DNA of 52,290 nt, counting the filler, from Ylistrum balloti (taxonomy: Eukaryota): assembly GCF_031769215.1 (NCBI RefSeq). It is 2 parts of 2 records of this genome, joined end to end, with 100 filler letters (N's around TTAATTAATTAA, not from the genome) between each part and the next. Parts side by side here need not be neighbours in the genome. Positions count along the whole stretch, not along the records: positions 1 to 29,277 come from NW_026781947.1; 1 more part is not named here. One strand, written 5' to 3'. A model generated the notes under the pieces. The model had not been told where the DNA came from and did no database searches. It was given only the letters and a program-made list of their open reading frames with translations. The position numbers were made by a program, and so were the translations under genes. Shown here in pieces: positions 1 through 21,412 of this stretch (position 1 is its first letter; each line of letters starts with the position of its first letter).

Positions 1-500
1 GAGGACTTTCATTAGAATCAACACCAACAAAGAAAGGACCTTTCGTAAAGGGAGGACATTTTGGAGGTCCTCTCTTTTCCACCTCCTAATTTTCCTTATT
101 CAGCAATAAATTTTCATTTTTTTTACAAAAAAGCCCGTCCTTTCTTTGTCCCAAAATTGGACAGTGTGTGATGCTCTTCACACAAAAATATCGATGGTGT
201 GTTTAACTTTCATTAAACTTCGTACACACTTGGCGGGGAAAACTTTTGGGTGCGTATAAAATTACAATTTTAAAAGAAGCGACGCGCAACCTTTTTTCTC
301 GCTTACTCTTACTGTAATAGAAGTATACGGACAGCAATATGCATATACCGAAATAAACATGGCATTCCAATATTTTAATCTTGAGACAAGTTATATCTTT
401 CGAGCTAGATAAGTACATTTCGTTTCGTCAGATTCCGTGTTCTTTTTCTTAACAATACATAAGCTGACATCGGCTGCGCCTCTCCGAGGAGTGAGGCGCT

Positions 501-3500
501 ATGCCTCTTACGAAAAGACTGCGTTCTTTAACAGAGGTAAGTTATCTGTCACATTTTATCTTAACAACGGTAGCTAGCCCCCATGAAAAATTATATAGCT
601 TTCCAACATTTAAAACTGAATTAACTTTGTTAAAAATAGCTTGATTCAACAACTTTATTTCCCACTTGCTTATAATGGCCGCCTCTGTGCGGGATCTCTC
701 TAGATTTGTCATTGTAACTTGACATTCCCGCTCATTTATTTTTGCTATGTTTACAAGCACAAATCTGGAGAGATTCCGCATAGTGACGGTCATTCCAAAT
801 AATAAAATAAGTGGAAGTAAGTGTACATAGTTTACAACATCTAATTGTTTTGATACATATGCACGTACACTGTAGGTAGAAAAATGTTTTATCTTTCAAT
901 CGACGTATAATTTATAAATATCGCGTTGTCATAAATTATCTAAAATATTGCTTGAACGCCGACCCTTGCAGTTCGCGTTTTTTTTGTAAGGAAGAATACT
1001 CTAACTATTGACCGCGACCATGTCAAAAATAAAATCGTGGTGAGATAGTCAGAACCCTTCAGACTACTCTTGCCTTAATTAAGGGGTTAGGCCGATTACA
1101 GGTGGTTCACACCTCCTTTGTTTATATAATTCTAAGCCAGTGCCCTAGTGTCTGGGTTGAGTGGGCTGACTGTAATATATTATATATCAATGTATGATGA
1201 GGACTTTTTACTTCCCCCACTGCAATTTTGAAATTGCACCTGATGCATGCATGTATAATGCTAAACTGCAGTAGTTTAATCTGTGTCCAACATATTGTCT
1301 GGTAAAGCAGCCAGGAGAGAACACATTTAACTTGTCAAAATTCATTATACATGTAACTTATCTCCAGCTGTATTGAAAAAAGGAAAGAAAAAAAAATCAT
1401 GTATTCCTGAATTCTGGGTCTGAATACTGGTCCACTCTTATTATAATACTATGACTACTTCCTGCAATTGATAAATAAAATATCACAAAAAGAAACTCCA
1501 TCAATTTTACAAGGTTAGAAGTGATAGTGTATTGTAATGTCTGGTATCTACTTGTTTTGCATGAAATTTGTTGAGCAGAATGTAATTTGTATAAGAACAA
1601 AAGGAAGTTTGTAGGAGAACATAGCTTTGTTCCTAGTGCTATTAGATTTTTTTTAAGGCTGTCACGGGTACAAAATGTTGGCCCCGAGTACTCGAATTTC
1701 AATACCTGACCCGTAACCAACAATGGTCATGAGTCGTTAGTCTACATGCATACAGTGTTACATGCACAGAGAGGACAAATTTACCTACGTGTAGTGTGGG
1801 GCTTGATACAGTCTCATATAAGGGGGAGGGGGGGGGGGGGGGGGTATAATAAAATCATTTGGAATCGTATGCTTCCTTGCTGATATTTCAGTATTTACTC
1901 ATTGCAAAACTTCATCCTGTAAACGAGAGGATTAGGCTCTATAATGCTAACGTTGTGACAGAATATGAAGAAATCAATTTGCATATAATATGCCCAACAG
2001 AAAGTAGCAGTCCCATGACAATTCTGATCCGGAAAGTCTCTAGCTAGTTTTATACATGTATACGACCATGATTAAGGTTTCAAGTACACATGGCTGCTTG
2101 AGCCAGAGGTGACGGTTTCTGTAATGAAATACAAGTGTGAGTATAAACATTAGTAATACATTGTTGCGTGTGAACATATTGGATACAGAAATTGTAATGT
2201 CATCAGAGTAAGAAATTTTATTGATTTAATAAAGTTTTACTGGTAACATTGACATAAGACCAATATTTCCTATTTTGACGTGTACTCGGGTAGACATTTT
2301 TGAAACAGGTCACTGTTCAAACCCGACCCGTGTCCGGGAACTCATGACAGCCCTAATTTTTTTAACCATCAATTTCTGTATAGCCCCATTTTTGAGAGAT
2401 TTTTCTTGAAATCTTAACAGATTTTTATAATTGTGTAATATATTTTCTTTTCAGAAAAAGAGTAATGGTCCAAAGACAAGGCCACTTGATGACTTCATCA
2501 TTGTAAATATACCAAAAAAAGGTATAGCATCTTTTGTATTGAAAATCCATTCAGAACAATTTAAAAGGATCATTAAATATATTGTCAGACATAAAAAGAA
2601 AAGTGTTTAATATATATTTTATTTCTTTTTCATGCATGTCGATTTACTTCAAGAATAATTTTTTGCTAAAACTACAGAATAGAAGAGTAGAGTAATGATT
2701 TACAACTGCACAAGGACTTGATGGTATTAATGATGTAGTAAATAAGAAATTTAACTGCCGATCCTAGTGCTTATAAATCTCACTTATAGTGTTCAGGACA
2801 GTACATTATTTACATATGTCACATCATCATCTAATTAATTCATTATACAATTCTGATTAATTTGTGTTAAACTTATATATTATGTATTCAGACTGAGATT
2901 TATTTGAGCTAGCATCAGTCATTAGATATTGTGTGTTAAGATTATAGTTGACAAATTAAATATGCAGAATTTAATATCAAAATGTAATCTTTTCCCATAG
3001 GTAAAGGTGTGCTGGCAAAAAAATATATACCAAAAGGGGACACTGTGCTGGAGTATTGTGGTGTCATAAGGACAGATGAACCACATCAAAGTGAGGATGA
3101 CACATATATTTTTGAATGTGTCTTCAAAGGCAAACAGTACTGGTATGTAAGATAGCATCCTGGTTTATTGCATGGTGTCCTAATTTCAGCTGGGCATAGT
3201 TTGCAGGTAGACCATTGCATATTAAGAACAAAATCCATCCAAGTGCCCAACAGAACATTTACATAGGTAGTGTTAGTGCAGTTTTTTTTTTAAAGCAGCA
3301 TTTTCAGGAAATTGGGAAAATTAAAAATTACTTATTAAAGCCAAAACAAAGTAATTTTTTTCAATTTCTGTTTTTATATTGGCCGGAAAAAATTCCTATG
3401 TTTTTATATTGACCGAGTACTCGTACTGTAATCATTTCAAAGGTTTCTGAAAATAAATGGCCCCATTATAGTTCCGTAATGTTAATTACAGGTAAACTTT

Positions 3501-6500
3501 CCTAGTTTTGAAATTTTTAAGAGATCCACATGCTCTTGTTTTTCTTTGTCTTTAATCAGTAATTTCCGTACTGCATGCTCTGTCTAGATTCCACCCCAGA
3601 TCTTGTTTTTAGTCTCACCCCAGCATACAAAATGGTGGCACCCATGTTTTTGTTTTGTTTCACTTTGGGACGATAATTAAGCAAGTTAGTGTCACTACAC
3701 ACTGTTTTAACATGACAGAATTCAAGAATAGATTCTTATAATATAGTTTGCGTTGTTCAGTACAACTTATATAGGTGTCGTATTTAAGTTGAAATCTGTT
3801 CTCGAATCATCTGCTTAATAGGCAGAATGCTTTTCACCACTAGGGCTTATTTGCCCTTCACAGTAAGAACTACGCTAATATTAGCACTTTGAGACATTTG
3901 GTTATATAAATTAGAAAAGGATGTTTACAGATTTAACATATTTAATTATTGTGACCTTAAAAGTGGGTCAAGGTCATTTATACTTGTATTGTAAAACTTG
4001 ACTACCAATGACATTCACATCTTACATACTACTAGTTCCAAATTATTCTAATGTTCTATCGACTCTTCATAAAGTTCTGGTATTGATGAATGTAAGAACT
4101 CTGTCCTGACGGAAATAAGGGACCGTGCCTTGGCTAGCATTAAAAGGGTGACTTTAATTATATCATAATATATGGAAATAATTTGTCGTGTTCACCAGCT
4201 TTAATTAGATCGGAGACCCTGGTGTCTACATTTTAGAGACCCCAATCAGAGTTTTTGCCAGGCATCTATAGTACCGGACCCATTCCCAATTTCAATCTGT
4301 ATTTTCCCAATTTGAATTAAAACAAGAAAACCTTAAAATATCATGCTAACAGTTATTACGAGTTTTCAGTCATTAGGCCTAATCATGTCGACCACACAAA
4401 TGTACACACGTATATTGGTAAGCGTGCGCTGGGAAGTCAAATCATATATGCGTTTGAATTGCACGTTGTATAAGGACTTGAATGCAAAGCGTTTACGGTA
4501 CATTGACATGTTTTTTAATGGTATTGTCACATAATTCTAAATACTACACAAAAAAGATTTTGGTGAAGGATTCATAGGATTTGGTGAAACTTACTAGTAT
4601 TTTCCCAAAATTTATGAAATACCAATGATATTTTCCCAATTTGTGGTAAATGCCGATGATATTTTCCCAATTTTTGCTCAGGGTCCCTTTCCCAAAATAG
4701 CTGGCAAAAACCCTGCCAATGTGGTTATTTGACAGTGATTTCACTATACTACAACCTGTTGTAAGTCTTCATTTTAAATCAGTGATCTTCAGTAAATAAT
4801 TACCATCTCGGCGATTGCATACAATAGTACGCGTTCAGCCCAAGCCGGATGTCATCAGTCTCCTCATACTCAACGTGTTAACTGTCATTAACCATTAATT
4901 ATACAATCAGCCAAGCCTTTCATGCTTGTTAGGTCACCTGGGTAAATTTGTTTACTTAAGGTAATTACATGTGTTAGGGTCACCCTCATTGTGGTTTCCT
5001 AATTATCAATGGATCAGACCACATCAAATGTTTCATCGCAGTGACCAGTCAATTAATTTTTCTGTAGAATATTTTTTTTAAAATCTGATCTCCAAAAAGT
5101 ACCTGCGCACTATACGCAAGTGCGCACTCTATGCGAATATTTACGGTAACACAAAAAACCTCTTGCCGTGTATTAATATTTTTCACTACCATATTTGTCC
5201 GCCAATAGGCCCATGCTCAGTAATAAGCCCACCCCCTTTTTTTTACCAACATTTGGGGGGGGGGATGTCCGGTAATAAGCTCATCCCCCATTCCGACCTC
5301 AGCAGTAAAAAAATCATGTAATGTGCACACTTGTGTAATATGAGTACCCTCAACTTAGGGTCTAAAAATGCTTAAAAAAATGCTTCTATTCGGGTAATGT
5401 TTGCATGATTTTCCTGTCAAAAACAATGTCCAACATACCTGGAACACTCACTCACTTGAGCATAAAATCTGTTTGTTCATGGTTTCTCAGCGAAGTGGGA
5501 TAATTTTACAAATAACATTTCTGATTTTCAATAAATTTATAATGAGAAATCAAAACATGACAAAGTTTTAGCGGTATGCCAACTTTTTTTTCACAGGTTA
5601 GCTGCAACGCATGATGATGGATCACTAGGCCGTCTGATAAATGATGACAGAAAGCCAAACCTGAAACCAAAGATGGTTCCGATTTGTGGAGAGCCCCATA
5701 TTTTCTTCTATGCCATCAGAGATATACATCCAAGGGAGGAATTGTTATACTGCTATGGAAATGGTCCATATCCCTGGAGAAATACTACAAATGTAAAGGA
5801 CTCTCCAAATGATCTTGTATCCAGTATACAGAAGGATAGTATACCTGTGACAGAAACTGATGATACTGCTACATACAGTTCCAATGAACCAGCATCTGAC
5901 ATTTCTGTGTCAATGGTCAACATCCCTGCATCTGCAACTGATGCCAGCAAACCAGATACTGACTTTTGTAAGTATAAATTATATATATGTTACACTTTTT
6001 TTTATATTGTTATGTCTTTATTTCTCTTGTGACACAGGAGGAGGATGAAAATAGGGTTCTAAAGACCTCTGATGAACAAATAATAAACATGTATCCCAGT
6101 AATCATCAGGAACAAAGTAAGATTATTTATCCTTTTGCAGTGATTTTTAGTAAACAATTAAGTAATTATATTATTTGCTGTATTGTAAAATCAAAAAAGA
6201 GAAACCATTTCATCTTTCTGTCACAAAGTTTGTATTTGAAACACATTCCTGTATTATCACTTTACCTGATGTGTATATATTACATTTTCAGTAACTACAC
6301 ACAGTCCTGAATGTATGTTACCAGATGTAACTGATGAAGATGTGATGGCTCCCTCATCGGTTGACAAGCATGACAAACCATCAAATCTACCAAGAGATAC
6401 AGTTGCTACCCTGGATGATGGCATTGATAACACCCCAGTTTCAACGACAAATGTACAAGTAGTTATGATGGAAACTGATGTTACTGCTACATACAGTTCC

Positions 6501-9500
6501 AATGAACCATCATCTGACATTTCTGTGTCAATGGTCAACATCCCTGCATCTGCAACTGATGCCAGCAAACCAGATACTGACCTTTGTAAGTATAAATTAT
6601 ATATATGTTACACTTTTTTTTTTTTTTTGTTATGTCTTTATTTCTCTTGTGACACAGGAGGAGGATGAAAATAGGGTTCTAAAGACCTCTGATGAACAAA
6701 TAATAAATATGTATCCCAGTAAGTATCAGGAACAAAGATTTTTTATCCTTTTGCAGTGTTTTCAGTAAGTAAATAAAGTAATATTTATTTATTTATGAGT
6801 ATTATCATGATTGGCTGTATACATGTGGAGAATTGAAACAGGGAAAAAATGTTCATCTGTCTGATACAAAGTTACCTTCTGTATTGCCACTTTACCTGGT
6901 GTGTATATTATATTTTCAGTAACTACACACAATCCTGAGTTTAAGTTACCAGATGGTGAAGATGTGAGAGCTCCCATATCAGGTGACAATAACCATGATA
7001 GAACATTAAATCTACCCAGAGATGCAGTTGCAAGCATTTGTGATGAATTCACTCCAATTTCTAGAGCTTGCTTTTATGTTCTGTCTGGATTTCGAATTAC
7101 TGAGGTATGTTAAGTATGTGAGTGGACAATGTGTGTTTTCAGTACACAACAAAGTTATTCCATGCCATAGATAACAGAAAGTGTGGGTTGGACTGTAGAC
7201 TTTTTATATGTTCATGTCAGTATTAAAATATTTATCATTTGTTCATTCCTTAATACCCACTTTTCATCTGACCTGCTTTCATGTAATTTTTACTTTTTTC
7301 ATCCAAACTCTTGGCTTCAGTACTACCTCTGGATGGTTTTCTAACTAACTAAATAGGGTCTTTCTATGTTCCATCGGCCGAAGGGTAAATGCCTTTAGCC
7401 CATCTAGATTTAAATCTATACATATGTTAGGGCTTTGTGTTAAATGTCTGTACTTGTGATGTGATTATCTACAACTTATTTGTATCTTGACAGAGGGGCA
7501 GACTGCCTCAAAAAATTAACATATTACTTGTCTTCAGCACAGTCGGTATAACTTCACTGATCATATACATCTAATTATTGTATGTTTAAATAGGAAATCA
7601 AAAAGAAATTCAGAAGAGTGGCCATTGCATCAGGATTTAGGAAATGCAGATACCTTGACTCCTTCTCATCATCTGTTACCCATGTACTAATGAAAGAAGG
7701 TAGGTTCAAGTTGTTAGCTAAATCTTCCTGTTTTGTGGTTTTAATTTCAGTGATTAATTTGGATGCATCTTATAGTATATAAATCTTGATTTTCTTATTT
7801 TTGCAAAGGATGTTTTTAGACAGGTAACATTTTACTTTTTTTTTTTACTTTTTTTTTTTAACCTATATTTTTTTTTTTTTTTAACCTATATAACATGGTT
7901 TTGGTATATCAGATAAAATTTAAACTTGGACATACATTGAGGGTTCATCGTCACCATCTTTGCAAGATTGTGAATCTGCTGATCCGTTATATGAGCCATC
8001 TGATACCGACACAGATGAAGAGTAGGTATTCATAACATGGTATTCTTCATTAGCTTCTCCTAGTTAGGTTAAAAGACGCAACCTTGTTTCCCAAATCAAA
8101 AATTTCTATTGCATTCAGTTTTTATGTCGCCTGCTTTAGCAGGTGACAGGTAAGTATTGCTATGTCGGCGTTGGCGGTATCATCCACCCTATGGTTTCTG
8201 TGTGATAACTTGAGTTATCTTGGACCGATCAAACTCAAACGTCACACAATGCTTCCTTACCAATAGAGCTTGCCTAGGGTTGCTTTTCAGGGTCGATGGT
8301 AACAGGTCAAGGTCACTATTGTTAAAAATAGATTTTTTTTTCTGTGCGATAACTTGAGTTCCTCTGTGCCAAATAAAGTCAAACTTCACACAATACTTCC
8401 TTATCAAAAGTGCTTGCCTGAGATTGCTTTTCAGGGTCGAGGGTCAAAGGTCAAGGTCACTCTTACTATAAATAGAAAATGGGTTTCTGCTTGCTTTGCA
8501 GGCGACACATCAACTTTCGTGGAATTCTTGTATGAGTACTGTTTAATATAAAATTTACGAAAAGATATTTATACATGTGTTAATGTTCAAAATCATTAAA
8601 TCATAAAAATAGCAAAAAAAAAAAAAAAATGAAATAATTTAACTGTATACTGATGTATTTCACAAAAGATGTCTTCCAATGACAATACCATTTAATATGT
8701 AACTTGCACCATTTTTAGCTCACCTGGTCCGTGGTGTCCGTCAACAATTTCTTTAATTGACTTCTTATAAACTACTGGGTGGAATTTGGTCAAATTTGGC
8801 TGCAAGTATCCTTGGCTGGTGGGGATTCAAAAATGTACAAATGAAGTGGCTGACCCCCCAGGGGCCTGAGGGGCAGAGCCCAAAATGGGAAATTTGGCCA
8901 TATAGCTTTAAGCATCTTCTTCTCTGAAACTAAATAATGACTATCAATCATATTTCGCTGGATGAAGCATCCTCAGAGTCGAGAATTCAAAAATTTACAA
9001 ATGAAGTGGTTGCCCCCCATGGGACTGAGGGGCGGGCCTAAATGGGGTACTTTGGCATTATTACTTTAAGTATCTTCTTCTCTGAAACTAAATAAATGCT
9101 GTGGGTCATATTTGGCAGGAAGCATTGTCAAGAGTTTGGGATTCAAAAATGTACAAATTGTCAAGCTGACATTGGAGGTGGGGGGGACAACTTATGCCTA
9201 GAACTCTTGGTCATAAAGATCCAGGTGAGCAGTACATTCCCTCTGGGCCTCTTGTATTACATTATTACTGTAATTTATTTTATTTCATTTATTTATTTAC
9301 TTATTATTTTTCTGTTTGTCCTCGGTGTACTTCCGTAGTGTAGATTCCTGTTGCGTATTATTATTAATTATTTTAGTACCAGAAGCAAGTACTGAGTCCA
9401 AGTGAGTTATATGGTGTGCATGATTACACTAACTTTTTTCCCAGTAAATGATTAAAAACAAGATAAGCTTTGAAAGTATTTTTATATCTCTGCAACGGAG

Positions 9501-12500
9501 TTTGGGGGTTAATTTGGAAACAGCTTGTCCATCCATCCCCCCATCTGTCTGCAGACAGACCTTGCCCACTCAACTCTTCCTACAATTTTCATTCAAAATC
9601 CTTTAAACTTAATAGGCTGTTAGAGTTAAAGTTGAAGGTGTGCTTCTTGATGTTATTTTTCATCTTCCCAACCATTTTTATGAAAGTTAGGCCCCTTTAC
9701 ATTTTGCTCAATTATTATTTCCACAAAGACACATACAAAATTTAATCAAACAGTCTCTGGATTAAAGATAGGATCATAATAATTGAAACTTAGCAAATCG
9801 TGTAACCTATTAATGCCTATAAATATCATTCATAGGTGTTCCAGTACCGTTTCTATGGAAACATGATTGGGACTATGGTTGATTGATAATGAAAAATTGG
9901 TATACAGGTGTTGTTCGACATGAGAAACACCAAGGTGAAGTTCATTTTGTGAAATTATAGTTGCCATGGTAACCAGGTCACTATACACAGGTTTTTGTGA
10001 AATAGCCATAACTCATCAACCCTGTGGTCATTTTTATTGAAACTTGGTCAAATGGTGCAACTTATTCCAGTACCATTACTATTAAAACATGATTTAGGCT
10101 TTTGTTTGGACGAAAATGAAATAGTATCAGATTTTCACGGAAATTGGTATATAGGTATTGTCTTTCATCAGGAACACAAAGATGAAGTCCATTTTCTAAT
10201 GTGAAAATATGGCCTTCGAGGGAGGCTTCTGATTTGTCAAATTTAGATATTGTTGGAATTTTTGTGAAAATTGAGTCAAAGGTATTGTCTGTGAGGAACA
10301 TGGCAATGCAGTTCTTTTTCTGATTTTAACACCTGAAACAGTGTATGGGGCATATATACTGGAATCACTTGTCAGACTCCGTGGCTAAAACAATGCATGT
10401 ATAAATTCTTTGCATCTGCAGGGGTTTTAGCTATCTTCATGATGACAGTTCTAGTTATAACATAAACGGTCCTTTTCCATCTATAACATGGACCGTTTTC
10501 AAAAAAAAAATGCTTGTATCACTTGCCAGTTTTTAGTACAAAATGTTTTTTAGTATTATATATTCATTGGAAGAAAATTATATCCTGGTTGGATCTAGTC
10601 TGGCAGTATTTTCATTTAACTACACTTGTATAGTACTTTAAAAGTTCTTTATTTGAATTTTTTAAAGGTGGAAACAATTTATTTACAATACTTCTATGAG
10701 CTGTTGATTAACACCGGAAATCAATCAATCCATGCCATACTTTAATATGTAGTTAGCTATAGGTAAAAATCAATTGTTTTATGCAATATTTCATATCATT
10801 TGGTAAATGATCTAGAGAGGTAGAGGTTGTCTTACAGAGTATCTGAAATTGAAATGAAAAAATTCTAACCTATGACAGTACAACCAGATATATCTCTTGC
10901 ATTCCCATCAGTTACTAATGATGTCGTCCAGACATATTTCTAGCTTTTAGTTAATTTTTACAGAGTTATTGACAACTCAGCCAGATCAGATGACTCAAGT
11001 GAAATCCCAATCTTGGATCCCAAGGCTTTGAATCAGACTGAAGAAAATATCCAAAAAGATGGAGTTACAGTTAAACTGTTTTCTCAGAATAAAAACAGGA
11101 AAAAAATTTGGGATAAAAAACACTACTGCCTATATTGTAACAAGCCTTTTGCAAAACTTCCTCGACATTTGGAAACTCAGCATAAAGATGAAATTGATGT
11201 AATAAAATTGCGTTCACTAGACAGGCGTAGTAAAGAACAAAAAAGTGCAAGAGCTACTCTGATTGACAAGCTGAGAAAAGCCGGTAACTATAACCATAAC
11301 ATAGAAGTTCTGAAATCTGGACAAGGAGAGGTTGTACCAAAGAAAAGTTTAAGTAAGTCAAGAAGCAGTGATGATTATTTGCGATGTAGACATTGCCTTG
11401 GATTTTACCTAAAGCATGATCTATATCGGCATGTCAGCAAGTGTACCTTCCGTGAGGAAAAACTTGTTAAAGGGACAAGACACCAAAGTAATAGTGCTTT
11501 TCTTCTGCCATCAACTGCTTCAGAAAAGGCTGGTTCAGATTTTCAGAAGGATGTCGTCGCCGACATGAGTGTGGATAACATTTCACTGTGTGCAAGAAAT
11601 GACGAGTTAATCATTCTGTTTGGGGAAAAGCTTTACAAAAAACATAAAGCTTTGCCCCACATGCATCAATACATCCGAACAAAAATGAGGGAACTGTCTC
11701 GTTTTCTACTGAAGGCACGAGAGGAAGATGAAGATATAGTTACATTATCAGATTGCATCCAAGCAAACAAGTTTGAGACCTGTGTCAAAGCTGTGAGATC
11801 ATTATGTGGAGTTAAATGTGGCACAAAAGCGGATATCCCATCTTTAGCTTTGAAAATTGGATTTTCATTGAGCAAATGTGCCAATATCAGATTATCAAAA
11901 GCTCTGGTAGAGGGTGATTCTAAGGTACAGGATAATGTGGAAAGGTTTCAGAGACTGTATTCTATGGATTGGAATACTGAAGTTTCTTCCACAGCATTAA
12001 AAAGTCTAGAAACAAAGAAGTGGAACAAGCCTTCATTGCTTCCACTCACAAATGATGTAGTGAAGTTCCAAAAGTACTTGGACCAGCAAATTGATGCCAA
12101 CATAAAACTTCTGGAATCAAAAAACGCCCAAGGTTGGAGGCCATTGTGTGAAGCTATTTTAGTTAGCATCATACTGTTCAACAGAAGAAGGAGTGGTGAA
12201 GTGGAGAGGTTGTCCTTGGATGTTTTCAGTCTCAAAAGCAAAACTGACCTCATGCCAGACGTGAAGGAAACCCATAACAATTTGGAAAAACATCTTGTGG
12301 AGAATTTGTCAAGAGTGGAAACTCGTGGAAAGCGGGGAAGAAAGGTGCCAATTTTGTTCCCCAAAAAAACAGAGGAAGCACTGGATCTTCTCATACAATA
12401 CCGATCAGCAGCTGGAATAGAAAAGGGAAACCCATATGTGTTCGCTAACAACGCAATAGGCTATGTACGCGGAGCTGACTGCATGAGAAGTACAGCATCG

Positions 12501-14299
12501 GAAGCAAAGTTAGAAAATCCAGAAAATATGAGGTCTACAAATTTAAGAAAACATGTTGCAACACTTTCGCAAGTTGTTAACTTGAGGGACAATGAACTAG
12601 ACATTTTAGCTCAGTTCCTTGGACACGATGTGAAGGTCCATAGAAATTTGTATCGTCTCCCTGAGGATACTATTCAAATTGCTAAAGTGGGAAAATTACT
12701 TATGGCAGCAAACAAAGGAACATTGGGAAAGTTTTCTGGAAAGTCTTTAGATATTAGCATTGACCAAGAAGGTAAAAATAAATAAGACATATAATTATAG
12801 TGTATCATTGAGTTCTTTAATAGGTTTATTACGGTGGTAATGATGCTTTTAGAATTTTTATATATCATGTTCTGTACTCAAAAAGTTCAAACTGCTTTCA
12901 TGAAAGGTCACATTGATAATATCTTTTGGCATCTGCCATGACCAATGTAGTTAGTAAGGATATCTAATATTGTTTCAATAGTTTCATTACAGAAACAGTT
13001 GGTATTTCATTCTTATGTTAAATAGTTATTTTGAATACAATTGTACAATTAAATCATTTAATTTGTCCTTGTTACAGTGTCTGATGAATCCGAATCTGAG
13101 GATGAAACTACACAGTCTACAGAAGTCAGAGATCAAGGTAAATAACATGCATGAATTGAAATACAGTGGACCCACGATAATCCAAACGCCTAAAATCCGG
13201 AAAACTCACAATCCAGACAAAATGTTTGGGAACAGATTTCTTTAATGTTATTTGTACATAAATTCGGCAGTCCGGAAAACTCGTAATCCGGACGATTTAG
13301 GCTGGAAATGAAAGCGTCTGGATTTTCGAGGGTCCACTGTAAATGCCATGTTGTAGATCTTTTATGTCTTGGCCAGTTGGCAGAACCTGTCTTCATCTCG
13401 TGACTTTGGCAGAATATACCTGTGAATGAGCTTTTAGTAAATGTATTGTAGGAAAGCCTTCAAACATCAGTAAAGATGTAAATGTCCCATCATTTTTTCC
13501 CCGCAGATGATGCAGATCAAGATAATGAGAAAGCAGGAAAGAGAAATAGCAGAAAATCTCTCCACAGTACAGAAGCCACTTGCATGACACAGAAACCAGG
13601 TATTTTTTTATGTTTATACATCATATAGAATAAAATAGGGTGGTCGGGTGGTGCAGTGGATAGCGCACTTGCCTTTCACCAAGGCGGCCGGGGTTCGATT
13701 CCCCGATCGGACGTGAAAAGGTATGGGGTCACCTGCCCGACCACGTGGGTTTCCTCCGGGTTCTCTGGTTTCCTTCCACACAAAGACCCCTCGCGCGCTA
13801 ACACCTGGGCCAACAAGAGTGATTAATATAAGTTGTATAACTTGTTTCATAATTGTTGTAAAATAAATAAAGTTTATAGTTTATAGAATAAATGATTGTC
13901 ACAGTAAAATATAACTTGTGTATCTGTATATCATATTATATCTGGACCATAAGTGTCTGTGGTACATACATGTAATTGGATTTAAAGATAGAAGTAACAA
14001 AAAAAGTTTGTAATTTATACTGAAAAGGGTTTTAAGAGCAGTTCACAAAATAATCCTGTATAGTTTATCTTGTTTCTTTAATAGGAAGTAGGAGAACTGT
14101 AAAGAGAATACCATGGACAGAAGAAGAGAGAAGTGCTGTTAAATCAGAAATGGAGCATTTTCTTCATATCAGGAAAACTCCAGGAAAACTGGACTGTGAC
14201 AACTGTTTACGCAAATATCAATGTCTGAGTAGAAGAAATTGGAAAAACATCAAAAACTTTGTCTACAATTGCATTCAAAGTTTAAAGAAATGTCATTAA
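501..14299 (+). CDS. Multi-exon gene: SET-domain lysine methyltransferase fused to tyrosine recombinase plus C-terminal Myb/SANT-like domain (Crypton-like transposase)
   Basis: Manual splice model: join(501-536,2455-2521,3001-3142,5597-5967,6292-6585,6920-7104,7594-7699,7913-8021,10964-12771,13078-13137,13507-13599,14085-14299). All introns are GT-AG with matching phases (0,1,2,1,1,0,1,2,1,1,1). The total is 3486 nt = 1162 codons, with one in-frame TAA at 7921-7923. An alternative path (skip 7594-7699, use 7913-8025) is fully open at 3384 nt. The protein starts MPLTKRLRSLTE-KKSNGPKTRPLDDFIIVNIPKK-GKGVLAKK and ends NIKNFVYNCIQSLKKCH*. Exons 7-8 are the least certain. Confidence 0.82.
1654..2355. 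mobile_element. hAT-like MITE in intron 1
   Basis: TIRs TAAGGCTGTCA / TGACAGCCCTA, with 8-bp TSD ATTTTTTT at 1646-1653 and 2356-2363. Confidence 0.7.
3001..5775 (+). CDS. SET domain (exon 3001-3142 plus 5' part of exon 5597-5967)
   Basis: Spliced translation GKGVLAKKYIPKGDTVLEYCG...YIFECVFKGKQYW/LAATHDDGSLGRLINDDRKPNLKPKMVPICGEPHIFFYAIRDIHPREELLYCYGNGPYPWR. It contains SET motifs GxG, EYxG, GRLIN and ELLYxYG, and resembles the KMT5A/SETD8 type. Confidence 0.9.
4247..4715. mobile_element. MITE with 15-bp TIRs and 5-bp TSD
   Basis: TIRs CAGAGTTTTTGCCAG / CTGGCAAAAACCCTG (1 mismatch), with CCAAT at 4242-4246 and 4716-4720. Confidence 0.7.
5853..7050 (+). repeat. Tandem ~620-bp duplication of an exon-intron-exon block
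   Basis: 5853-6470 is highly similar to 6471-~7050 (GAAACTGATG...CCAGATACTGAC.TTTGTAAGT...CACAGGAGGAGGATGAAAATAGG...TTTTCAGTAACTACACAC). Confidence 0.9.
8119..8531 (+). mobile_element. Non-autonomous Helentron-like (HINE/DINE-1-type) element
   Basis: It starts in a T run. Subterminal IR TGTCGCCTGC (8125-8134) pairs with GCAGGCGACA (8498-8507). It has a 5' local palindrome and ends in CTTGT. Confidence 0.6.
8712..9255 (+). mobile_element. Non-autonomous Helentron-like (HINE) element
   Basis: TTTTTAGCTCACCTGG at the start, CCAGGTGAGC at 9221-9230, and a 3' end GGGCCTCTTGT. Confidence 0.65.
9479..10456 (+). mobile_element. Helentron-like (HINE) element, possibly composite
   Basis: TTTTTATATCTCTGCA at the start, TGCAGGGGTT near the end, and a 3' CTAGTT. 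The internal sequence is of the same style as 8712-9255. Confidence 0.45.
10964..12771 (+). CDS. Large exon: Zn-finger-like motifs plus tyrosine recombinase (lambda integrase fold) catalytic domain
   Basis: ORF 11013-12785 extends 5' to the acceptor at 10962-63 and ends at the donor at 12772. It has CLYC..RHLETQH and CRHC..RHVSKC motifs. YR motifs are NRRRSGEV (R), RGKRGRK (K), STNLRKH (HxxR-equivalent), LGHD (H) and VHRNLY (catalytic Y at 12651-12653). Confidence 0.92.
13164..13339. mobile_element. Tc1/mariner-type MITE
   Basis: TIRs CAGTGGACCC / GGGTCCACTG, flanked by TA on both sides. Confidence 0.8.
13635..13881 (+). mobile_element. tRNA-derived SINE
   Basis: A box TGGTGCAGTGG (13649-13659), B box GGTTCGATTCC (13692-13702), central CACGTGGGTTTCCTCCGGG core and AT-rich tail. 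11-bp TSD TATAGAATAAA at 13624-13634 and 13882-13892. Confidence 0.85.
14085..14299 (+). CDS. Terminal exon, Myb/SANT-like helical domain
   Basis: After acceptor TTTAATAG it reads GSRRTVKRIPWTEEERSAVKSEMEHFLHIRKTPGKLDCDNCLRKYQCLSRRNWKNIKNFVYNCIQSLKKCH*. W-T-x-E-E and R-x-W patterns are Myb-like. It is absent from the ORF track. A candidate AATAAA lies at 14839-14844. Confidence 0.75.
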
Positions 14300-15286
14300 A
14301 TGATGTCTAAGTAGGCAATATAGACATAAAAAGAAAAGCAATTTCAAGTTACATGTTGGAAAATATAAATGAGATTCATTGCAATTAAAATGAAATTTTG
14401 TAAGAATTTTTGAATATTCTTTTTATTGAAGTTTTATCATGATAATAATTGTAAGGTAGAGATTGCATGATGGATTGATAAAGGATAATTGTTGTTTTGG
14501 CAGACTCAATTCGGTCAAGGGGATTTATAAATGAAATTTAGAAGATGCATTATTTAGTGTTAAGATGAAATACCATTTTGTTGATATTTACCTTCTACAC
14601 TAGTTGCATTAAAAATATTTGTAATGGAATGAAATTTGAGAAGAAAACTGTATATTTCATGCTTTGTCATCCTTTACATATTGCAGTGTACAAGTTTGAC
14701 TGTGATCAAACTTACTGGTAATGATTATTCTTGTTCTCTATAACATTACTGTATCAGATACGTCACTTTTTTTTTATTTTAAAAGTGGCAGAAGGTCACA
14801 CAATGTGTTAAATTCTGTTCATTGATGCTTAATGCAGGAATAAAGTTCACTTATATTGAACATTTCATTTGCATGTTTTATTCCTCATGTATTTTTTTAA
14901 GCTATTGAGTAAACAAGTAATCATTGATAGTTTGATTGAAAAAAAAAATGACTTTGGCGTTACTTTACATTGCCAAATAAATTCAAACTGAGGTAAAATT
15001 TGATTACTTTGTATTGCACAAGGGTCTAAACACAAGACATGCATTGTCATGGCAAATGAAATGTCAGACGTAGTGTTTCACCTTTTGTTGCTGAGATATA
15101 AAGTTGTTATTCAATGACAGTTTAAAAAATGCTTTTGGAATCCACTTTAGAATAGAAATTATGTTGGATCATAATGACTTTTGTTTTTGTTGTCCTAATA
15201 ATGAGACGGATTCAATTTACGGAAATAATTTCATTTTTCCCCCAATTTTTGACATGTTTTGTTCTTATCTTTGTCAGATGGTAATA

Positions 15287-15463
15287 CAGTGTAACTTGTC
15301 TAAACCGGCCCCTGTGTAATCCGGATCTCTCTGTATTCCAGCCAAAATGTTTGGTCCCAGCACTGGAAAATGTAAGCAATGTTGACCTCTACGAACCGGA
15401 CACCTGGGTAAACCGGCCAAAAAGTTTGGTCCTGGTGACATCCGGTTTAGACAAGTTACATTG
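15287..15463. mobile_element. Tc1/mariner (pogo-like) MITE
   Basis: 22-bp TIRs CAGTGTAACTTGTCTAAACCGG / CCGGTTTAGACAAGTTACATTG, flanked by TA on both sides. Confidence 0.85.
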
Positions 15464-15559
15464 TATATTGCATCTGTTTGTGGTGCTTGTGTTCGATTTG
15501 AAAGAAATAATAAAAAATAAACCTCAATGATTTATCTCGCCTTTTGTGTTACTTAATAC

Positions 15560-16027
15560 AATATTGCCCCTAGGGGCTGATAACAGGGACAAAGGATCAA
15601 ACCGAATGAAAGATTGAATTTACTATTTGATATCTTTTCACTGATAAACATTTGATTATAACATGGAGCAAAGTTGGTGAGAACTAAACTTGGAGCCAAT
15701 TTACCAAAGGTCAATGTCACTGGGGGAAAGGTCAAGGTCAAATGTGGTATCTAGTCACTGATAAATGTTTTGTTTTCACATGATGAAGCAAAATTGACTG
15801 GAATCAAACGAGAAGTAAAATGACAAAAGGTCAAAGTCACTGGGCAAAGGTAAGAAAAAATCCGCCCCTGGTCGCTGGGTTAGAGCAGAGACCTATATCA
15901 CCATGGTTATATAACTAGGTCTCTGGTTAGAAGCCTGTTTGATATCTCTTATTATGAAAACAAAATATCAGTTATATGTATAAATACATCAGAACTCAGG
16001 TGACCATTAAGGCCCATGGACCTCTTC
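15560..16027 (+). mobile_element. Degraded Helentron-like (HINE) fragment
   Basis: Repeated AAAGGTCAAGGTCA motifs as in 8119-8531, and a 3' end TCAGGTGACCATTAAGGCCCATGGACCTCTT resembling the end of 8712-9255. The start is approximate. Confidence 0.45.
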
Positions 16028-16216
16028 TATATAGTAAAAGAATTATGAACTTTTTACTTTGTCAAAATGCTGTTCTATTTGCTAGAAGAAAACATTAACA
16101 AAGGCGATTGACTGCATAGAAAACGGATATTAACCGATGTATCTTTTTCTATGGATAGTCAATATGAACGTATTAGCCAAGTAATACATATATATGTATA
16201 GGACATGTATGTACAG

Positions 16217-16680
16217 TCACGTCCTCTTTTTGGAGGTTACACACGTCCTCTCTTTGGAGGTGTCTGACGTCCTCTGTATGTTCACACACGTCCTCTGTAT
16301 GTACACACACGTCCTCTGTATGTTCACACACGTCCTCTTTTTGGAGGTTACACACGTCCTCTCTTTGGAGGTGTCTGACGTCCTCTGTATGTTCACACAC
16401 GTCCTCTGTATGTTCACACACGTCCTCTGTATGTTCACACACGTCCTCTCTTTGGAGGTATCTGACGTCCTCTGTATGTTCACACACGTCCTCTGTATGT
16501 ACACACACGTCCTCTCTTTGGAGGTAACACACGTCCTCTGTATGTAAACACACGTCCTCTGTATGTAAACACACGTCCTTTGTATGTACACACACGCGTC
16601 CTCCGTATGTACACACACGCGTCCTCGTTTTGTATCTAAGACACATTTGTCCTCCCTTTGTCGCAAATGTCCTCTCTTTT
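16217..16680. repeat. Composite 21/24-bp minisatellite with constant ACGTCCTCT core
   Basis: 21 GTCCT sites from 16221 to 16669, with spacings 24,24,21,21,21,24,24,21,21,21,24,21,21,24,21,21,23,23,28,20. There are two unit types: ACGTCCTCTGTATGTTCACAC and ACGTCCTCTYTTTGGAGGT(TACAC/GTCTG). Confidence 0.95.
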
Positions 16681-16846
16681 CATTCATTTTCAAATGATAA
16701 TAACGAAGCATTTAAATTACTTAGGTTAAATGAAAATTACGTGGTGAGTATACCTTCCAAGCCCGTTGTTTGCAGTCATTAATTACTGTGATAATACCAT
16801 TATATGTGAGTGCCCTTGGTTTACCTTTGGGAGCCAGGTCCTGACT

Positions 16847-17012
16847 NNNNNNNNNNNNNNNNNNNNNNNNNNNNNNNNNNNNNNNNNNNNNNNNNNNNNN
16901 NNNNNNNNNNNNNNNNNNNNNNNNNNNNNNNNNNNNNNNNNNNNNNNNNNNNNNNNNNNNNNNNNNNNNNNNNNNNNNNNNNNNNNNNNNNNNNNNNNNN
17001 NNNNNNNNNNNN
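16847..17012. other. Assembly gap (N run)
   Basis: Run of N. Confidence 1.
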
Positions 17013-19410
17013 TATCCCCATTGTCTTTACTTGGAATACCAAGGACAACTCCATCGCTCCTACCTCTATTTCCGACGATACGTCTCCACGACGCAGTTCA
17101 AGGACAAAACAGATACACCAGACATCTTTAATAACAACAAAAAAAAGTTTGCTAATGAATATTTACTCTGCTGGTCAATAGTCTGGAATTATTCAGACAT
17201 AGACAAGTGGTCATTATTGGTCACCAGCTCTGATCTGACCAGCTAATACATACCCCAACAAAACCCTTCTTGCCTGTAATGATTACGAAGGATTTCACAC
17301 ATGCCAGATATAAAATTTACAGATTCACACAGTTTGTGTATGAATTATATATAATATAAAGAGTCTGTAACATTGATACTGTAACGACAGACGTGTTTAG
17401 ACTATGTACATATCTTAGTAATTAAAAAACTCTCCGAAAAATAACTTTAATATGATGTATAATAGATTGGATCTATACACATTTTTAACCACAAACATTT
17501 TTGTCCATGAAAAATGACACAAATAACTTTGACTTTTCTATCAATTGCATTGCATTTTTCTCCGTTGCTTCACAATTAAGGCCCTTAGCATAACTGACGA
17601 GCCATTACCAAACAAATGTATGATGCAGGTTAAATAATTTGGCTCTGCCGTATTTAGCTCTAAATTTCTAGTTAAGAGCGTTATTCACTTGTTCATCTTT
17701 TGTACAATCTTCAAATCATCCATCTGGAGTTATGTACCTTGTGACATTATCAGATATGTGAAAAAAAATTAACGGAAGTATGGGGCTAGTGCACCTTCCA
17801 ATATAAATTTCAACATTCTTTTCGCTTAATTTTAGTTTTCCCCATAGGTCGCCCCCAGGGTTTCAAACTCAAGCCCCTAAACATCACTAACGAGTTCTTG
17901 AAGACGAAACAGCAGTATGAGGCAGTTTATTTCATTAACTGGCACTTCTGTATTCTTAATTTGTGTATTTTCTGCATTCTTTAACTTGTAAATACGTGTA
18001 CATGTATATCTAAGAAAAGAAAACAACACATCAGCTATATATGGTTATCCTTCCCAGTCTAGCTGCTGTTTTTTGGATGTAATTTCCGAATAACGGTGCC
18101 ATGTGTTTAGTTGACAGGAGTTATTGCATAGAAAGTTGTCTTCTAAAACAAATATGATAAATCGATAACTGTTAGGGGCCATATGTCCGTACTACCCTGT
18201 CGGTCTCGTGAAGACTTACCTGATGTATACATATGTATCAGATAACAGCAGCCACAGCTATACACCTGTGACTTCAGAAAACTAATTGTGTCTGGTTGTC
18301 TGATAGTGCTCTGAAAAGGTATTCATGTTCCCCCCAGGCGATCGGGGTGTGATTCTTCGCGATGACAATGTCCCCTTTCCGAACGTTTTGGTTTTCATCG
18401 GACACTCCGGTTTCCTTCCGTTCATAGTAAACATCTTCTGCACTTCCATTTGAACCAATGATTTTTATTACCAGCTTATACCATGCAGTTTCGCCATTGC
18501 TGTACAGTGTTTGCACCTGACATGACACACTGATGAGCTGTTATCCAATAATCGAGGTCATCATCAAATCTAGAATGAACACAATCGGTAAGACAGTGTT
18601 CCTTACAAGCATTTCACCAGCTCTAGTTACATATAAACTGTTTTCCAAATTCAATATGGCCGTCTTTTTGTTTGCTGGGTTTGTCCTCCTGTGAACAGCA
18701 AAGACCACTTTGAGGCGACATTTCCCTGTAGAAGCCGGCTTCCCAATTTAACAACACAAAGAAGTTTAACTACATCTCGCCTACGGACTCCACCACCTTA
18801 GCACAGACCGGTCCGTTTTTTCATCTTCCCGGGAAACACAAACCCCCAACGGGTAGGTAGCGTCAAGAACTACGCACCAGAGATGACGGAGGCATACATT
18901 TTGCGTTTTAACCAACTGCGGTATCGCAGCCCCATTCAATTTGTTGTGACAAGGAGAATTATTATATTTTGAAATATTTCAGAAAGGGGCAAATATTCAG
19001 GGATCTCCCCTGGCAGTGTTTAACCAATAGTCATTTAACATTTTGATCGTTTTATCTGCTCTAAATGTGGCAAATGTAATTTGGGTCTTCATTGCTGAGG
19101 AACACAATATCATAACTATTCATATATTGTTTGAAAAATGTTCAGGTAAACTCTGGTTAACTTCAACAAACATTTCAAAACACCGAGCATTACTGTGGCT
19201 TCTAAGCGATCGACTATTGGTCTCAAGGCTACGATTCTATAACAGTTCCTTAATTTATGCTTGATCACAACTCTATCTCCCACATCCGTGGCAATCTATA
19301 CATTTGTATAATGACAGTGGAATACTTGTATGTTATATGTTATCTATATATGTTTTCCCCTGCAATTTATGCATTAATCATTAACTGCAGTGTGACACAT
19401 GAACTAATCC

Positions 19411-19850
19411 TGTACCCAGAATCATGTCTCTCTGTCTGTACTCGGAACTCAACGTATGAATTTAGTACCCTGAATCACGTTTCTCTGTCTGTACTCGGAA
19501 CTCAACGTATGAATTTAGTACCCTGAATCACGTTTCTCTGTCTGTACTCGGAACTCAACGTATGAATTTAGTACCCTGAATCACGTTTCTCTGTCTGTAC
19601 TCGGAACTCAACGTATGAATTTAGTACCCTGAATCATGTCTCTCTGTCTGTACTCGGAACTCAAGGTATGAATTTAGTACCCTGAATCACGTTTCTCTGT
19701 CTGTACTCGGAACTCAACGTATGAATTTAGTACCCTGAATCACGTTTCTCTGTCTGTACTCGGAACTCAACGTATGAATCTAGTACCCTGAATCACGTTT
19801 CCCTGTCTGTACTCGGAACTCTAGGTATGAATTTAGTACTCTGAATCATG
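19411..19850. repeat. 53-bp minisatellite, ~8 copies
   Basis: Unit TGAATCACGTTTCTCTGTCTGTACTCGGAACTCAACGTATGAATTTAGTACCC, with copies starting at 19471, 19524 and onward. Confidence 0.95.
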
Positions 19851-21256
19851 CCTTATTTAATAATTTTTAACTTAAACAAAGCAAGGCTTGAGCACAAAAT
19901 TCATGCTTGAGCATGAGAACGGTTTCATGAATACGGGCCCTGGTCTTATTCTCCATTCTCCTTTCTTTTGGTCATATTTTTAACATAATTATATTGAATT
20001 CGAGTTAGGATTATAATTATGCTGACATGTTGGTACATGTAACTTGACCGACACATAACCATTTGAAGGACAAATTAATCTGTGGTGTAGTTTTGTATCT
20101 CAGAATGATGTACCGATAGCGCAATGGCTATTTTTGCATAGAGTCTGTTTGTATGCATTTGTCTGCCTGGAGTAGATGCATTTGTTTGGGTTTCCACTGG
20201 TGATGATACCACTGTAATTTGTCTGTGGTTCCGTGAGATAATCAAACCTTTGATTCCCCCAGACATTTTCGTCGATTGTCTCCCTATCATTGCCACTAAT
20301 GGTCAATGCGCAATCTCTTTAATCTTACACGAGTGTTATTTTTGGAATAATGCTACCGTTGTAATTCCGTTTCTGTTATTTTACGATAATCTAGCAGAAA
20401 TCTATAATGAATTGATTCCATCACTGGTGACAAGACTCCCGAACCCGTGGCAGGATTTTACGACGAGATGACATCCGTTCAATTCGGTCCAGACAGGTAG
20501 AGCAACATCAGATATAACAGACAAGTGTGTATCTCAGAGAGCAAGTCACACGCGGACGCCGCTTTGTGTATAAATAAACTGTACACATGTTTATATACAT
20601 ACGACATAAAATACAAACATATTGAAGTCTTGTGTAGAAGTGATAAACCTGGAGCCGGCAAATCAATCTCTGGGATTCTAGCAAAGTAACAATAGAGACT
20701 TCGATTGTATATTAAATTTAAAGCTTGCAGCAATACGTAGGCTTCAACGAAACATTAGACTATGAACAGAGTGTAGTCGTCCACAGTACATTCGGCTAAA
20801 GTCAATGAAGGTATGTATATAAATGATACAAATTGGGCTATTGGAAGAATGCTGTATAATTCACCTATCTCGACAACTTTCCATCTGATTTTCTTCAGGG
20901 TGAATTATAAGTGTGATGAATTCAAATTCCCTTTTGTGAACTTTCCATTTCTGGATAGCAAGATGCTTTTCTTTACTTTGTTCTAATTTCAGAACGTGAC
21001 ATTACTTACATGAATTCACTTAGCTTTATAGGACAGGAGTCGTAGATGAAGTGAAAGACGTTAACCCTCTTGGAACATGATTTTTTCATCATTGATATTT
21101 TCACAGGAAGAAAAGGGCGTTAGGGTTTGGACAATAGAGTGTTCAAGAGCACACTTTGGCTTTGGAATTCGTATAAAACACGTCAGGTCAGGTCAATACC
21201 GCCCTCTTTATTCTATTTTTAGTCATTATGGTATCCTGAAGTCATATTCCCATAGT

Positions 21257-21412
21257 CCGACCTTGTACAATATCAGCTGACAGTCCGACCTTGTACATTA
21301 TCAGGGGCTGACAGTCTTACCTCCGACAATATTAGGAGCTGACAGTCTGACCTCTGACAATATCAGGAGCTGACAGTCTGACCTCCGACAATATCAGGAG
21401 CTGACCTCTGAC
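21257..21412. repeat. ~31-bp minisatellite, ~5 copies
   Basis: Unit ACAATATCAGGAGCTGACAGTCTGACCTCCG. Confidence 0.9.

Follow-up and report, generated by a model that had tools for sequence, protein, structure and literature searches.

The locus described here raises the question of whether a SET domain of the histone-methyltransferase type and a tyrosine recombinase can be encoded by one and the same gene and, if so, whether this gene is a resident of the scallop genome or part of a mobile element. The stretch of DNA analysed (hereafter the window; 52,290 nt, filler included, from Ylistrum balloti) corresponds to contig JAUZWB010001132.1 (assembly GCA_031769215.1), in which locus L003 matches window positions 1059-22643 at 100% identity. 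As argued below, positions 197 to ~17012 are probably one copy of an intron-bearing, single-gene DNA element of 17-24 kb, belonging to a metazoan-wide family and most likely moved by its own tyrosine recombinase.

On the + strand, positions 1-16000 hold a single long open reading frame (ORF; 11013-12785, 590 aa) together with many short pieces. With homologues as a guide, thirteen candidate exons (e1 to e13) were rebuilt, all with AG/GT borders, and joining e1-e7, e9 and e10-e13 (path F) yields 12 exons with an open frame of 1133 codons, which opens on the + strand with the ATG at 501 and closes with the TAA at 14297-14299. The paralogous locus L002 (JAUZWB010000665.1), 98% identical, bears one RefSeq model, XP_060081505.1 (hereafter P0133; 1415 aa), with the same exons and the same start (MPLTKRLRSLTE); because this model uses these exons independently, the junctions are not a chance reading of the sequence. 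At a third locus, L001, the 814-aa RefSeq model P0001 has its start in the repeat exon and includes the 25-nt mini-exon e9. A first-pass annotation, made from the sequence alone, had proposed twelve GT-AG exons in matching phase that link a SET domain to two zinc-finger-like motifs, a recombinase and a Myb/SANT-like tail, here taken as being of helix-turn-helix type; both the phase-matched chain and the linkage in one multi-exon gene hold, the former in view of the open frame and of the agreement with P0133, the latter supported by Pfam, Foldseek and the joined frame. P0133 starts with SET and Ser/Thr-rich repeats, followed by two BRCT domains and an acidic stretch, and closes with zinc fingers plus recombinase and the tail; across the family, the comparison shows a single predicted gene running from a KMT5A-like SET through Ser/Thr repeats, a BRCT pair (in bivalves), zinc fingers and a Xer/Cre-type recombinase to a tail of DNA-binding type.

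The SET domain is split between two exons. Pfam SET (PF00856) matches in two pieces, the first (profile positions 1-42, E 4.5e-06) lying in 2988-3152 and the second (55-105, E 1.2e-09) in 5535-6029, and the halves join over a GT-AG intron (3142/gtatgt ... cacag/5597, a slash marking a junction here and below) through a split TG/G codon, which restores ...KGKQYW-LAATHDDGSLGRLINDD... in the protein. The halves had been placed at 3001-3142 and 5597-5775; the first interval and the start of the second stand, but the C-terminal exon ends at 5967. Chains of KMT5A/SETD8 are the best PDB relatives (E 1e-26), followed by the next families at 3e-20 and 1e-17, which, with the Pfam match, bears out the KMT5A-like assignment. 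An exhaustive search with a SET-domain profile returned 149 representative clusters at E <1e-30; at least 150 clusters of the element clade reach at least 122.6 bits against the SET profile, KMT5A itself scoring ~97 bits. Within this clade, GxG, EY and both tyrosines of ELxYxYG are retained.

Regarding the recombinase, the large ORF has 186 homologues, the best being 98% identical and from Ylistrum balloti itself. A profile of 50 homologues compared with PDB sequences retrieved no recombinase, only weak zinc-finger matches (Ros/MucR, Sgf11), and a comparison of folds was therefore needed. An AlphaFold model of the recombinase exon, built on 50 homologues, has a predicted local distance difference test (pLDDT) score of 86; in Foldseek, it aligns over 370-410 columns, both domains included, with XerH, XerA, IntI, Cre and lambda Int, and its residues 215-595 align with the whole of XerC/D. 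The predicted fold confirms, for exon 10, a two-domain tyrosine recombinase made up of a SAM-like core-binding domain and a catalytic domain. Five residues (R410, K457, R529, H555 and Y564) are, by sequence pattern, invariant or at least 90% conserved among the 50 homologues. Ahead of the fold lie two conserved C/H sets, at 59/69/74 and 142/145/157/161, which agree with the two zinc-finger-like motifs seen in the first-pass annotation and to which the Ros/MucR and Sgf11 matches refer. The proposal that SET, Phage_integrase and Myb would be recognised in the protein held in part: Pfam finds SET, and Phage_integrase is reached by 6 of the 50 recombinase relatives, but the single window ORF gives no integrase match and no Myb is found.

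Between SET and recombinase, the window retains approximately the first 50 residues of BRCT1 (exons 6-7), a truncated domain absent from the first-pass annotation, and not the complete BRCT fold (tandem pair). The pair stands between the N-terminal region and the recombinase in the bivalve members P0133, P0003 of Argopecten and P0115 of the oyster Magallana. As for the tail, it lies at the extreme C-terminus in 34 of 120 homologues and in 96 of the 313 proteins fetched. Its model is a three-helix (3-4 helix) bundle with a pLDDT of 94, and its best structural matches are homeodomains and Myb domains, with TM values of 0.6-0.75 at non-significant E (≥0.8). No Pfam match was obtained for the tail, nor any Myb or homeodomain match among 30 tails, so that the label Myb/SANT-like is acceptable as a fold class but not as family membership.

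The gene sits in a repeated unit (Table 1). The window unit is 97.8-98.8% identical to L002 9694-33413 and, from window position 6236 onward, to L001, and the flanks are unrelated at all three scallop loci and on both sides. With at least three loci in unrelated surroundings, the single-copy alternative, which would have pointed to a domesticated gene, is not borne out. Haplotigs of one locus were likewise considered and rejected, the flanks differing on both sides. L001 and L002 share a right boundary ~165 bp past the position matching window 16846, i.e. inside the N run of the window. Neither reverse transcriptase nor second long ORF occurs in the window unit or in the delimited Rhinichthys unit, no further gene was called in the scallop or Rhinichthys unit, and searches of the window returned no inverted repeats and no Rfam match. 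Next to these units, the left junction of L001 adjoins telomere-like repeats of (CCCTAA)n type (L001 9840-9891), and a Methyltransf_33 gene (L002 5423-9452) lies to the left of the intact scallop copy, ending ~240 bp short of it.

Copies in fish are closer still to one another. Four zebrafish chromosomes encode an identical 983-aa protein, and four 25-kb loci (L004-L007) are 99.97% identical throughout; since the identity spans the whole loci and no end is reached, the unit exceeds 25 kb in this species. In Rhinichthys, a block of 23.4 kb is found on two scaffolds, 99.99% identical and between different host genes, and both copies are flanked by (TG)n at both ends in the same orientation, the tract lengths and the outer flanks being different. 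Both Brachyhypopomus copies end on the right in '...AAGTA(TG)n', after which the flanks diverge, and the left junction of the scallop locus L002 reads (GT)16/GTGTGTTTAAC, the corresponding window junction being ...gatg/GTGTGTTTAAC. These junctions suggest recombinase-mediated insertion into TG microsatellites, and a crossover within the TG tracts is proposed on the basis of the TG/GT junctions taken together with the end repeats of 4-6 bp in Cryptons and the insertion of nimaviral elements into (TAACC)n. Near its right end, the Rhinichthys unit carries a tandem array longer than the 21-bp array of the scallop, and these right-end arrays are candidate protein-binding arrays. The size of the zebrafish region, identical over more than 25 kb with its ends beyond, could also be that of an endogenous large DNA virus fragment or of a much larger cargo element, for which the SET-recombinase gene would be the integration module only, and nimaviruses do enter simple repeats by means of zinc-finger-bearing tyrosine recombinases (PMC10871703); yet the scallop and Rhinichthys units are fully delimited (17-24 kb) and hold only the SET-recombinase gene and tandem repeats, and no viral gene was called in any locus, which leaves this explanation very improbable. 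The fish loci contain further repeats of their own. In zebrafish (L004-L007), tandem units of 3.2 kb lie upstream of the gene, with copies inverted downstream (1523-3233 against 25104-23390), besides an inverted pair of 944 bp (16214-17157 against 19980-19037). In Brachyhypopomus (L008/L009, ~14.6-47 kb), at least 25 copies of a satellite unit of ~1.16 kb occupy an intron of the SET-recombinase gene, which reaches 42-55 kb.

For a single-gene element moved by its own recombinase, the following mechanism is proposed. Guided by the zinc fingers and the tail, perhaps on the subterminal array, the recombinase would excise the unit as a circle, which would in turn re-insert via a crossover in a shared short core sequence, (TG)n being the probable one, TG microsatellites thus providing ubiquitous attachment sites. 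Where recombination takes place, nucleosomes or repair factors would be acted upon by the tethered SET domain, as well as by the BRCT domains when present; speculatively, this would likely take the form of H4K20-type lysine methylation and of binding to damage-response phospho-proteins. That the SET domain is an active methyltransferase, or has any part in silencing or repair, is pure conjecture. Tentatively, and with less than even confidence, the proposal can be extended to a metazoan-wide superfamily of giant, intron-bearing, TG-targeting recombinase transposons, whose tethered KMT5A-derived methyltransferase, joined by BRCT in bivalves, would mark or mask chromatin where recombination occurs and to which the KMT5A-like expansions of cnidarians and sea urchins, activated with the zygotic genome, would belong.

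The window copy itself is not intact. Its comparison with L002 reveals that 4.2 kb of the latter (20188-24366) have no counterpart, the breakpoint being at 7882/7938, and this deletion took most of BRCT1, the whole of BRCT2 and, from the acidic exon, its acceptor. The splice order of the paralogue (e7 to e8, path B) is therefore out of frame in the window, whereas paths A and F, which pass through the mini-exon, remain open. Relative to P0133, the 1133-aa product lacks one 98-aa repeat and 183 residues of the BRCT region, has one residue deleted and shows 16 substitutions, among which are D84A in the SET domain and P549R ('YLPC' to 'YLRC') adjoining the second zinc finger. D84A and a 3-bp deletion at 12749 are specific to this copy. 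Compared with the 98%-identical paralogue, which has the same exons and two BRCT domains in addition, the window copy is thus a deletion derivative, read as a recent and decaying one of an intact element.

Several observations weigh against an element moved by its own recombinase, and the first of them concern this locus. The RefSeq annotation gives three models here, of 403 aa (with the SET domain), 446 aa and 152 aa, and the recombinase exon differs from that of L001 by seven non-synonymous and two synonymous changes, a neutral-like pattern of low power, the changes being too few for Ka/Ks (window vs. L001) to decide. Along these lines, the locus might hold separate or dead genes, that is a SET-only transcript ending in intron 7 and unlinked recombinase and tail fragments, the 12-exon frame never being spliced; the three models, the frame-broken e7 to e8 path, the neutral-looking substitutions and the change D84A, which hits an Asp kept by 163 of 165 related SET domains, all speak for it. 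Conversely, canonical splice sites are retained by 12/12 exons, which form one open frame via the mini-exon used in P0001, the recombinase exon is free of stop and frameshift, and the divergence from L001 is 0.45% in exons vs. 1.1% outside them, in introns, so that such a dismembered locus is judged improbable.

The other adverse points bear on motifs, termini and family. All catalytic positions of the recombinase had been claimed to be present; this holds for R410, K457, R529, H555 and Y564, which are conserved, but not for the His of HxxR, replaced by an invariant Thr (T526) in the homologues, and the remaining R-K-R-H-Y pentad resembles that of type IB topoisomerases. In the SET domain, RL(V/I)ND replaces the RLINHS of KMT5A, with N in 165/165 and D in 161/165 clade members, the window included; of the KMT5A-type motif set (GxG, NH(S) and ELxYDYG), NH is thus changed to ND, to which the window copy adds D84A. 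The His of NHS in SET enzymes matters for cofactor binding and activity, and since this cofactor motif is replaced by ND, methyltransferase activity is not to be assumed; judging from their motifs, neither catalytic activity, of recombinase or of SET, is assured. The right terminus of the window unit is masked, and only three scallop copies are known, one of which (L001) is 5'-truncated, as a clean circle-integration model does not predict. The TG tracts could belong to the element and not to the target, few copies stand behind the TG lead, and (TG)n is the commonest vertebrate microsatellite. Finally, none of 50 family members matches PF12012, PF11917 or PF12550 at E ≤0.1, the Pfam families of the described Crypton lineages (CryptonA/DUF3504, CryptonF/GCR1_C and DUF3435); a feature score of 0.88 to clusters of DUF3435 in the Atlas provides a lead only.

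The distribution of the family brings in a further alternative. Among the 150 best representatives of the SET profile search, 37 have an N-terminal SET followed by the zinc-finger-recombinase core, and the order SET, recombinase, tail is found in 27 of all fetched proteins, from teleosts, poison frogs, the starfish Acanthaster and the scallop. These entries are named 'uncharacterized proteins', SET-only fragments bearing the automatic name 'KMT5A-like', and the suggestion that similar SET plus integrase-like proteins would be found as uncharacterized entries is thus borne out in many animals. The proteins are often identical on several chromosomes of one species, and one oyster cluster gathers 135 sequences at ≥90% identity. 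Scallop, zebrafish and Rhinichthys have introns at matching positions, namely just before GxG, after YC/YW and right after '...LD.I.I..E', and the three share zinc fingers and recombinase in one exon and the tail in the last exon; the simplest reading of this agreement between scallop and fish is a shared, old gene structure. It is also what would be expected from a host gene family, i.e. an anciently domesticated SET-recombinase gene, combining a KMT5A paralogue with a recombinase-derived DNA-binding module, that was segmentally duplicated. The strong conservation of SET and tail residues, the regulated embryonic expression of N-terminal-SET KMT5A-like genes (PMC10368294) and the low number of known scallop copies, three with one truncated as is typical of duplication or rearrangement, fit this view. 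It is nonetheless judged unlikely because copies 99.97-99.99% identical are spread over separate chromosomes or scaffolds, where they share sharp ends but not their flanks and lie within introns of other genes, because copy number is variable and high (the 135 sequences of the oyster cluster, 8 identical zebrafish entries), because the catalytic pentad is conserved, unlike in domesticated DUF3504 proteins, and because the SET label is scattered over the recombinase tree, truncated models among it. On this tree, labelled for SET presence or absence, 21 changes are needed; as truncated models and isoforms are mixed in and confound the labels, it does not date the fusion. Ten fetched proteins (P0160, P0260 and eight others) show SET and tail with little or no recombinase and, from their sequences, may be splice isoforms, possibly regulators, or broken copies. 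A HECT match in P0024 (Triplophysa) may be an artefact of the gene model.

Among known systems, the nearest in behaviour are the Cryptons, DNA transposons moved by a tyrosine recombinase (Goodwin et al., 2003; Kojima and Jurka, 2011; PMC3212892), whose described members have direct repeats of 4-6 bp at both ends, taken as substrates of the crossover (PMC3212892). As in the SET-recombinase elements, the recombinase is their sole enzyme, reverse transcriptase is lacking, introns are possible and, in fungal Cryptons, a C-terminal DNA-binding domain is also present; animal Cryptons, in contrast, were described without C-terminal domain or terminal repeats (PMC3212892). Cryptons have at their ends neither terminal inverted nor long direct repeats, only short direct ones, whereas the present family differs by its SET domain, two zinc fingers, conserved tail, size of 17 to >25 kb, many introns and (TG)n ends. 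Of what defines a Crypton operationally, a recombinase as sole enzyme was found in the window and Rhinichthys units, and several copies with common ends and unrelated flanks at three scallop, two Rhinichthys and four zebrafish loci. The first-pass designation of a Crypton-like element is thus upheld for a recombinase-only unit at three or more loci with unrelated flanks, but in this operational sense only, because the recombinase sequence fits no described Crypton Pfam family.

Retroelements of DIRS1 type share with the present family a eukaryotic recombinase and the encoding of a methyltransferase-like domain; they differ by their reverse transcriptase, RNase H, inverted terminal repeats and DNA-methylase-like domain, SET being of the protein-lysine type. 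A DIRS/Ngaro retroelement was rejected for the window unit, which has no reverse transcriptase. SETMAR (Metnase) combines a SET lysine methyltransferase and a mariner transposase in one polypeptide, being a primate host gene, present in single copy, that acquired a DDE transposase; to our knowledge, this domesticated host gene is the only familiar SET-transposase fusion. Here, unlike in SETMAR, the SET domain lies inside a multi-copy tyrosine-recombinase element present in several phyla. With the H4K20 mono-methyltransferase KMT5A (SETD8, PR-Set7), the nearest solved SET, the family keeps GxG, EY and ELxYxYG in common, but its SET is N-terminal where that of KMT5A is C-terminal, and NH(S) is changed to ND.

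Genes named 'KMT5A-like' were counted at 65 in Hydractinia, 24 in Hydra and 61 in sea urchin (PMC10368294). By description, they have an N-terminal SET of SETD8 type, a long C-terminal region conserved between phyla and dozens of dispersed copies, as in the family presented here, but they were read as host H4K20 methyltransferase paralogues and no recombinase or integrase was ever mentioned; very probably, they are members of the SET-recombinase family. Endogenous nimaviruses, with genomes of ~200 kb or more, have tyrosine recombinases that target (TAACC)n telomere repeats or 28S rDNA (PMC10871703). Again compared by description, these resemble the present recombinase by a C2H2 part, a SAM-like N-domain and the entry of a large element into simple repeats, and are distinguished by the lack of a SET domain and by being carried by viral genomes. 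In the literature searched, no paper was found to connect a SET domain with an element of tyrosine-recombinase type, nor to describe the present family as a transposon, an existing consensus entry in Repbase or Dfam being possible.

Should the proposed reading be true, nature would offer an example of an active-looking mobile element whose transposition enzyme, fused to a histone-type methyltransferase, writes chromatin where the element itself sits. In the annotations of fish, amphibians, echinoderms, molluscs and cnidarians, dozens of 'KMT5A-like' genes would then have to be re-read as transposon genes, which would touch studies of H4K20 methylation in early embryos. If the link with (TG)n is true as well, a eukaryotic recombinase with a simple and ubiquitous target would be at hand, of relevance for genome engineering and for microsatellite-associated structural variation.

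Table 1. Coordinates, in window positions, of the repeated unit, the exons of its gene and the associated repeats and breakpoint.
Feature	Position	Strand	Description
Repeated unit, one copy	197-17012	+	Left end ~197-203 (...cgatg/GTGTGTTTAACTTTC); right end inside masked N run
Exon 1	501-536	+	ATG and MPLTKRLRSLTE; donor GAG/gtaagt; equals P0133 residues 1-12
Exon 2	2455-2521	+	Pre-SET segment; P0133 residues 12-35 at 96%; AG/GT borders
Exon 3	3001-3142	+	SET N-terminal half (GxG, EY motifs); Pfam SET positions 1-42
Exon 4	5597-5967	+	SET C-terminal half (RLINDD, ELLYCYG, PWR), then Ser/Thr-rich stretch; D84A vs. paralogue; Pfam SET positions 55-105
Exon 5	6292-6585	+	98-aa Ser/Thr-rich repeat exon; two such in paralogue L002
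Exon 6	6920-7104	+	Third repeat-type exon, 3' end being the start of BRCT1 (ACFYVLSGFRITE); P0133 402-463 at 97%; resembles BRCT of P0003
Exon 7	7594-7699	+	BRCT1 continued; remainder of BRCT1 and whole BRCT2 lost in window copy
Deletion breakpoint 7882/7938 and acidic exon remnant 7939-8021 (e8)	7882-8021	+	Remnant 5'-truncated, acceptor gone; L002 20188-24366 without counterpart
Exon 9	9377-9401	+	25-nt mini-exon (LPEASTESK); preserves frame from e5 or e7 into e10; used in P0001
Exon 10	10964-12771	+	Two zinc fingers, then predicted core-binding and catalytic recombinase domains; the 590-aa ORF
Exon 11	13078-13137	+	Acidic linker; 100% match to P0001 and P0133
Exon 12	13507-13599	+	Linker; from P0001/P0133 comparison and joined frame
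Exon 13	14085-14299	+	C-terminal three-helix (homeodomain/Myb-like) tail and stop codon
Subterminal array	16206-16619	.	~16 copies of 21-bp unit (ACGTCCTCTGTATGTTCACAC), near right end; also in L001 and L002
N run (masked or gap)	16847-17012	.	Covers right terminus of unit

Some minor features of the window deserve mention. The Ser/Thr-rich exon and its intron are unequally duplicated in tandem (5848-6117 vs. 6466-6737, and 6271-6327 vs. 6899-6955), the copy number of this exon varying among the three scallop loci. Outside the unit, two minisatellites occur in the flank, at 19412-19848 and 23265-23741, with 8 copies of 53 bp and 20 copies of 24 bp, respectively. In intron 12, a tRNA-like sequence with an odd anticodon was reported by ARAGORN at 13643-13713 (+), within a stretch of ~220 bp that recurs inverted at the far end of the window (29072-29277, -) as well as in L001 and L002, and that is probably a tRNA-derived short interspersed element.

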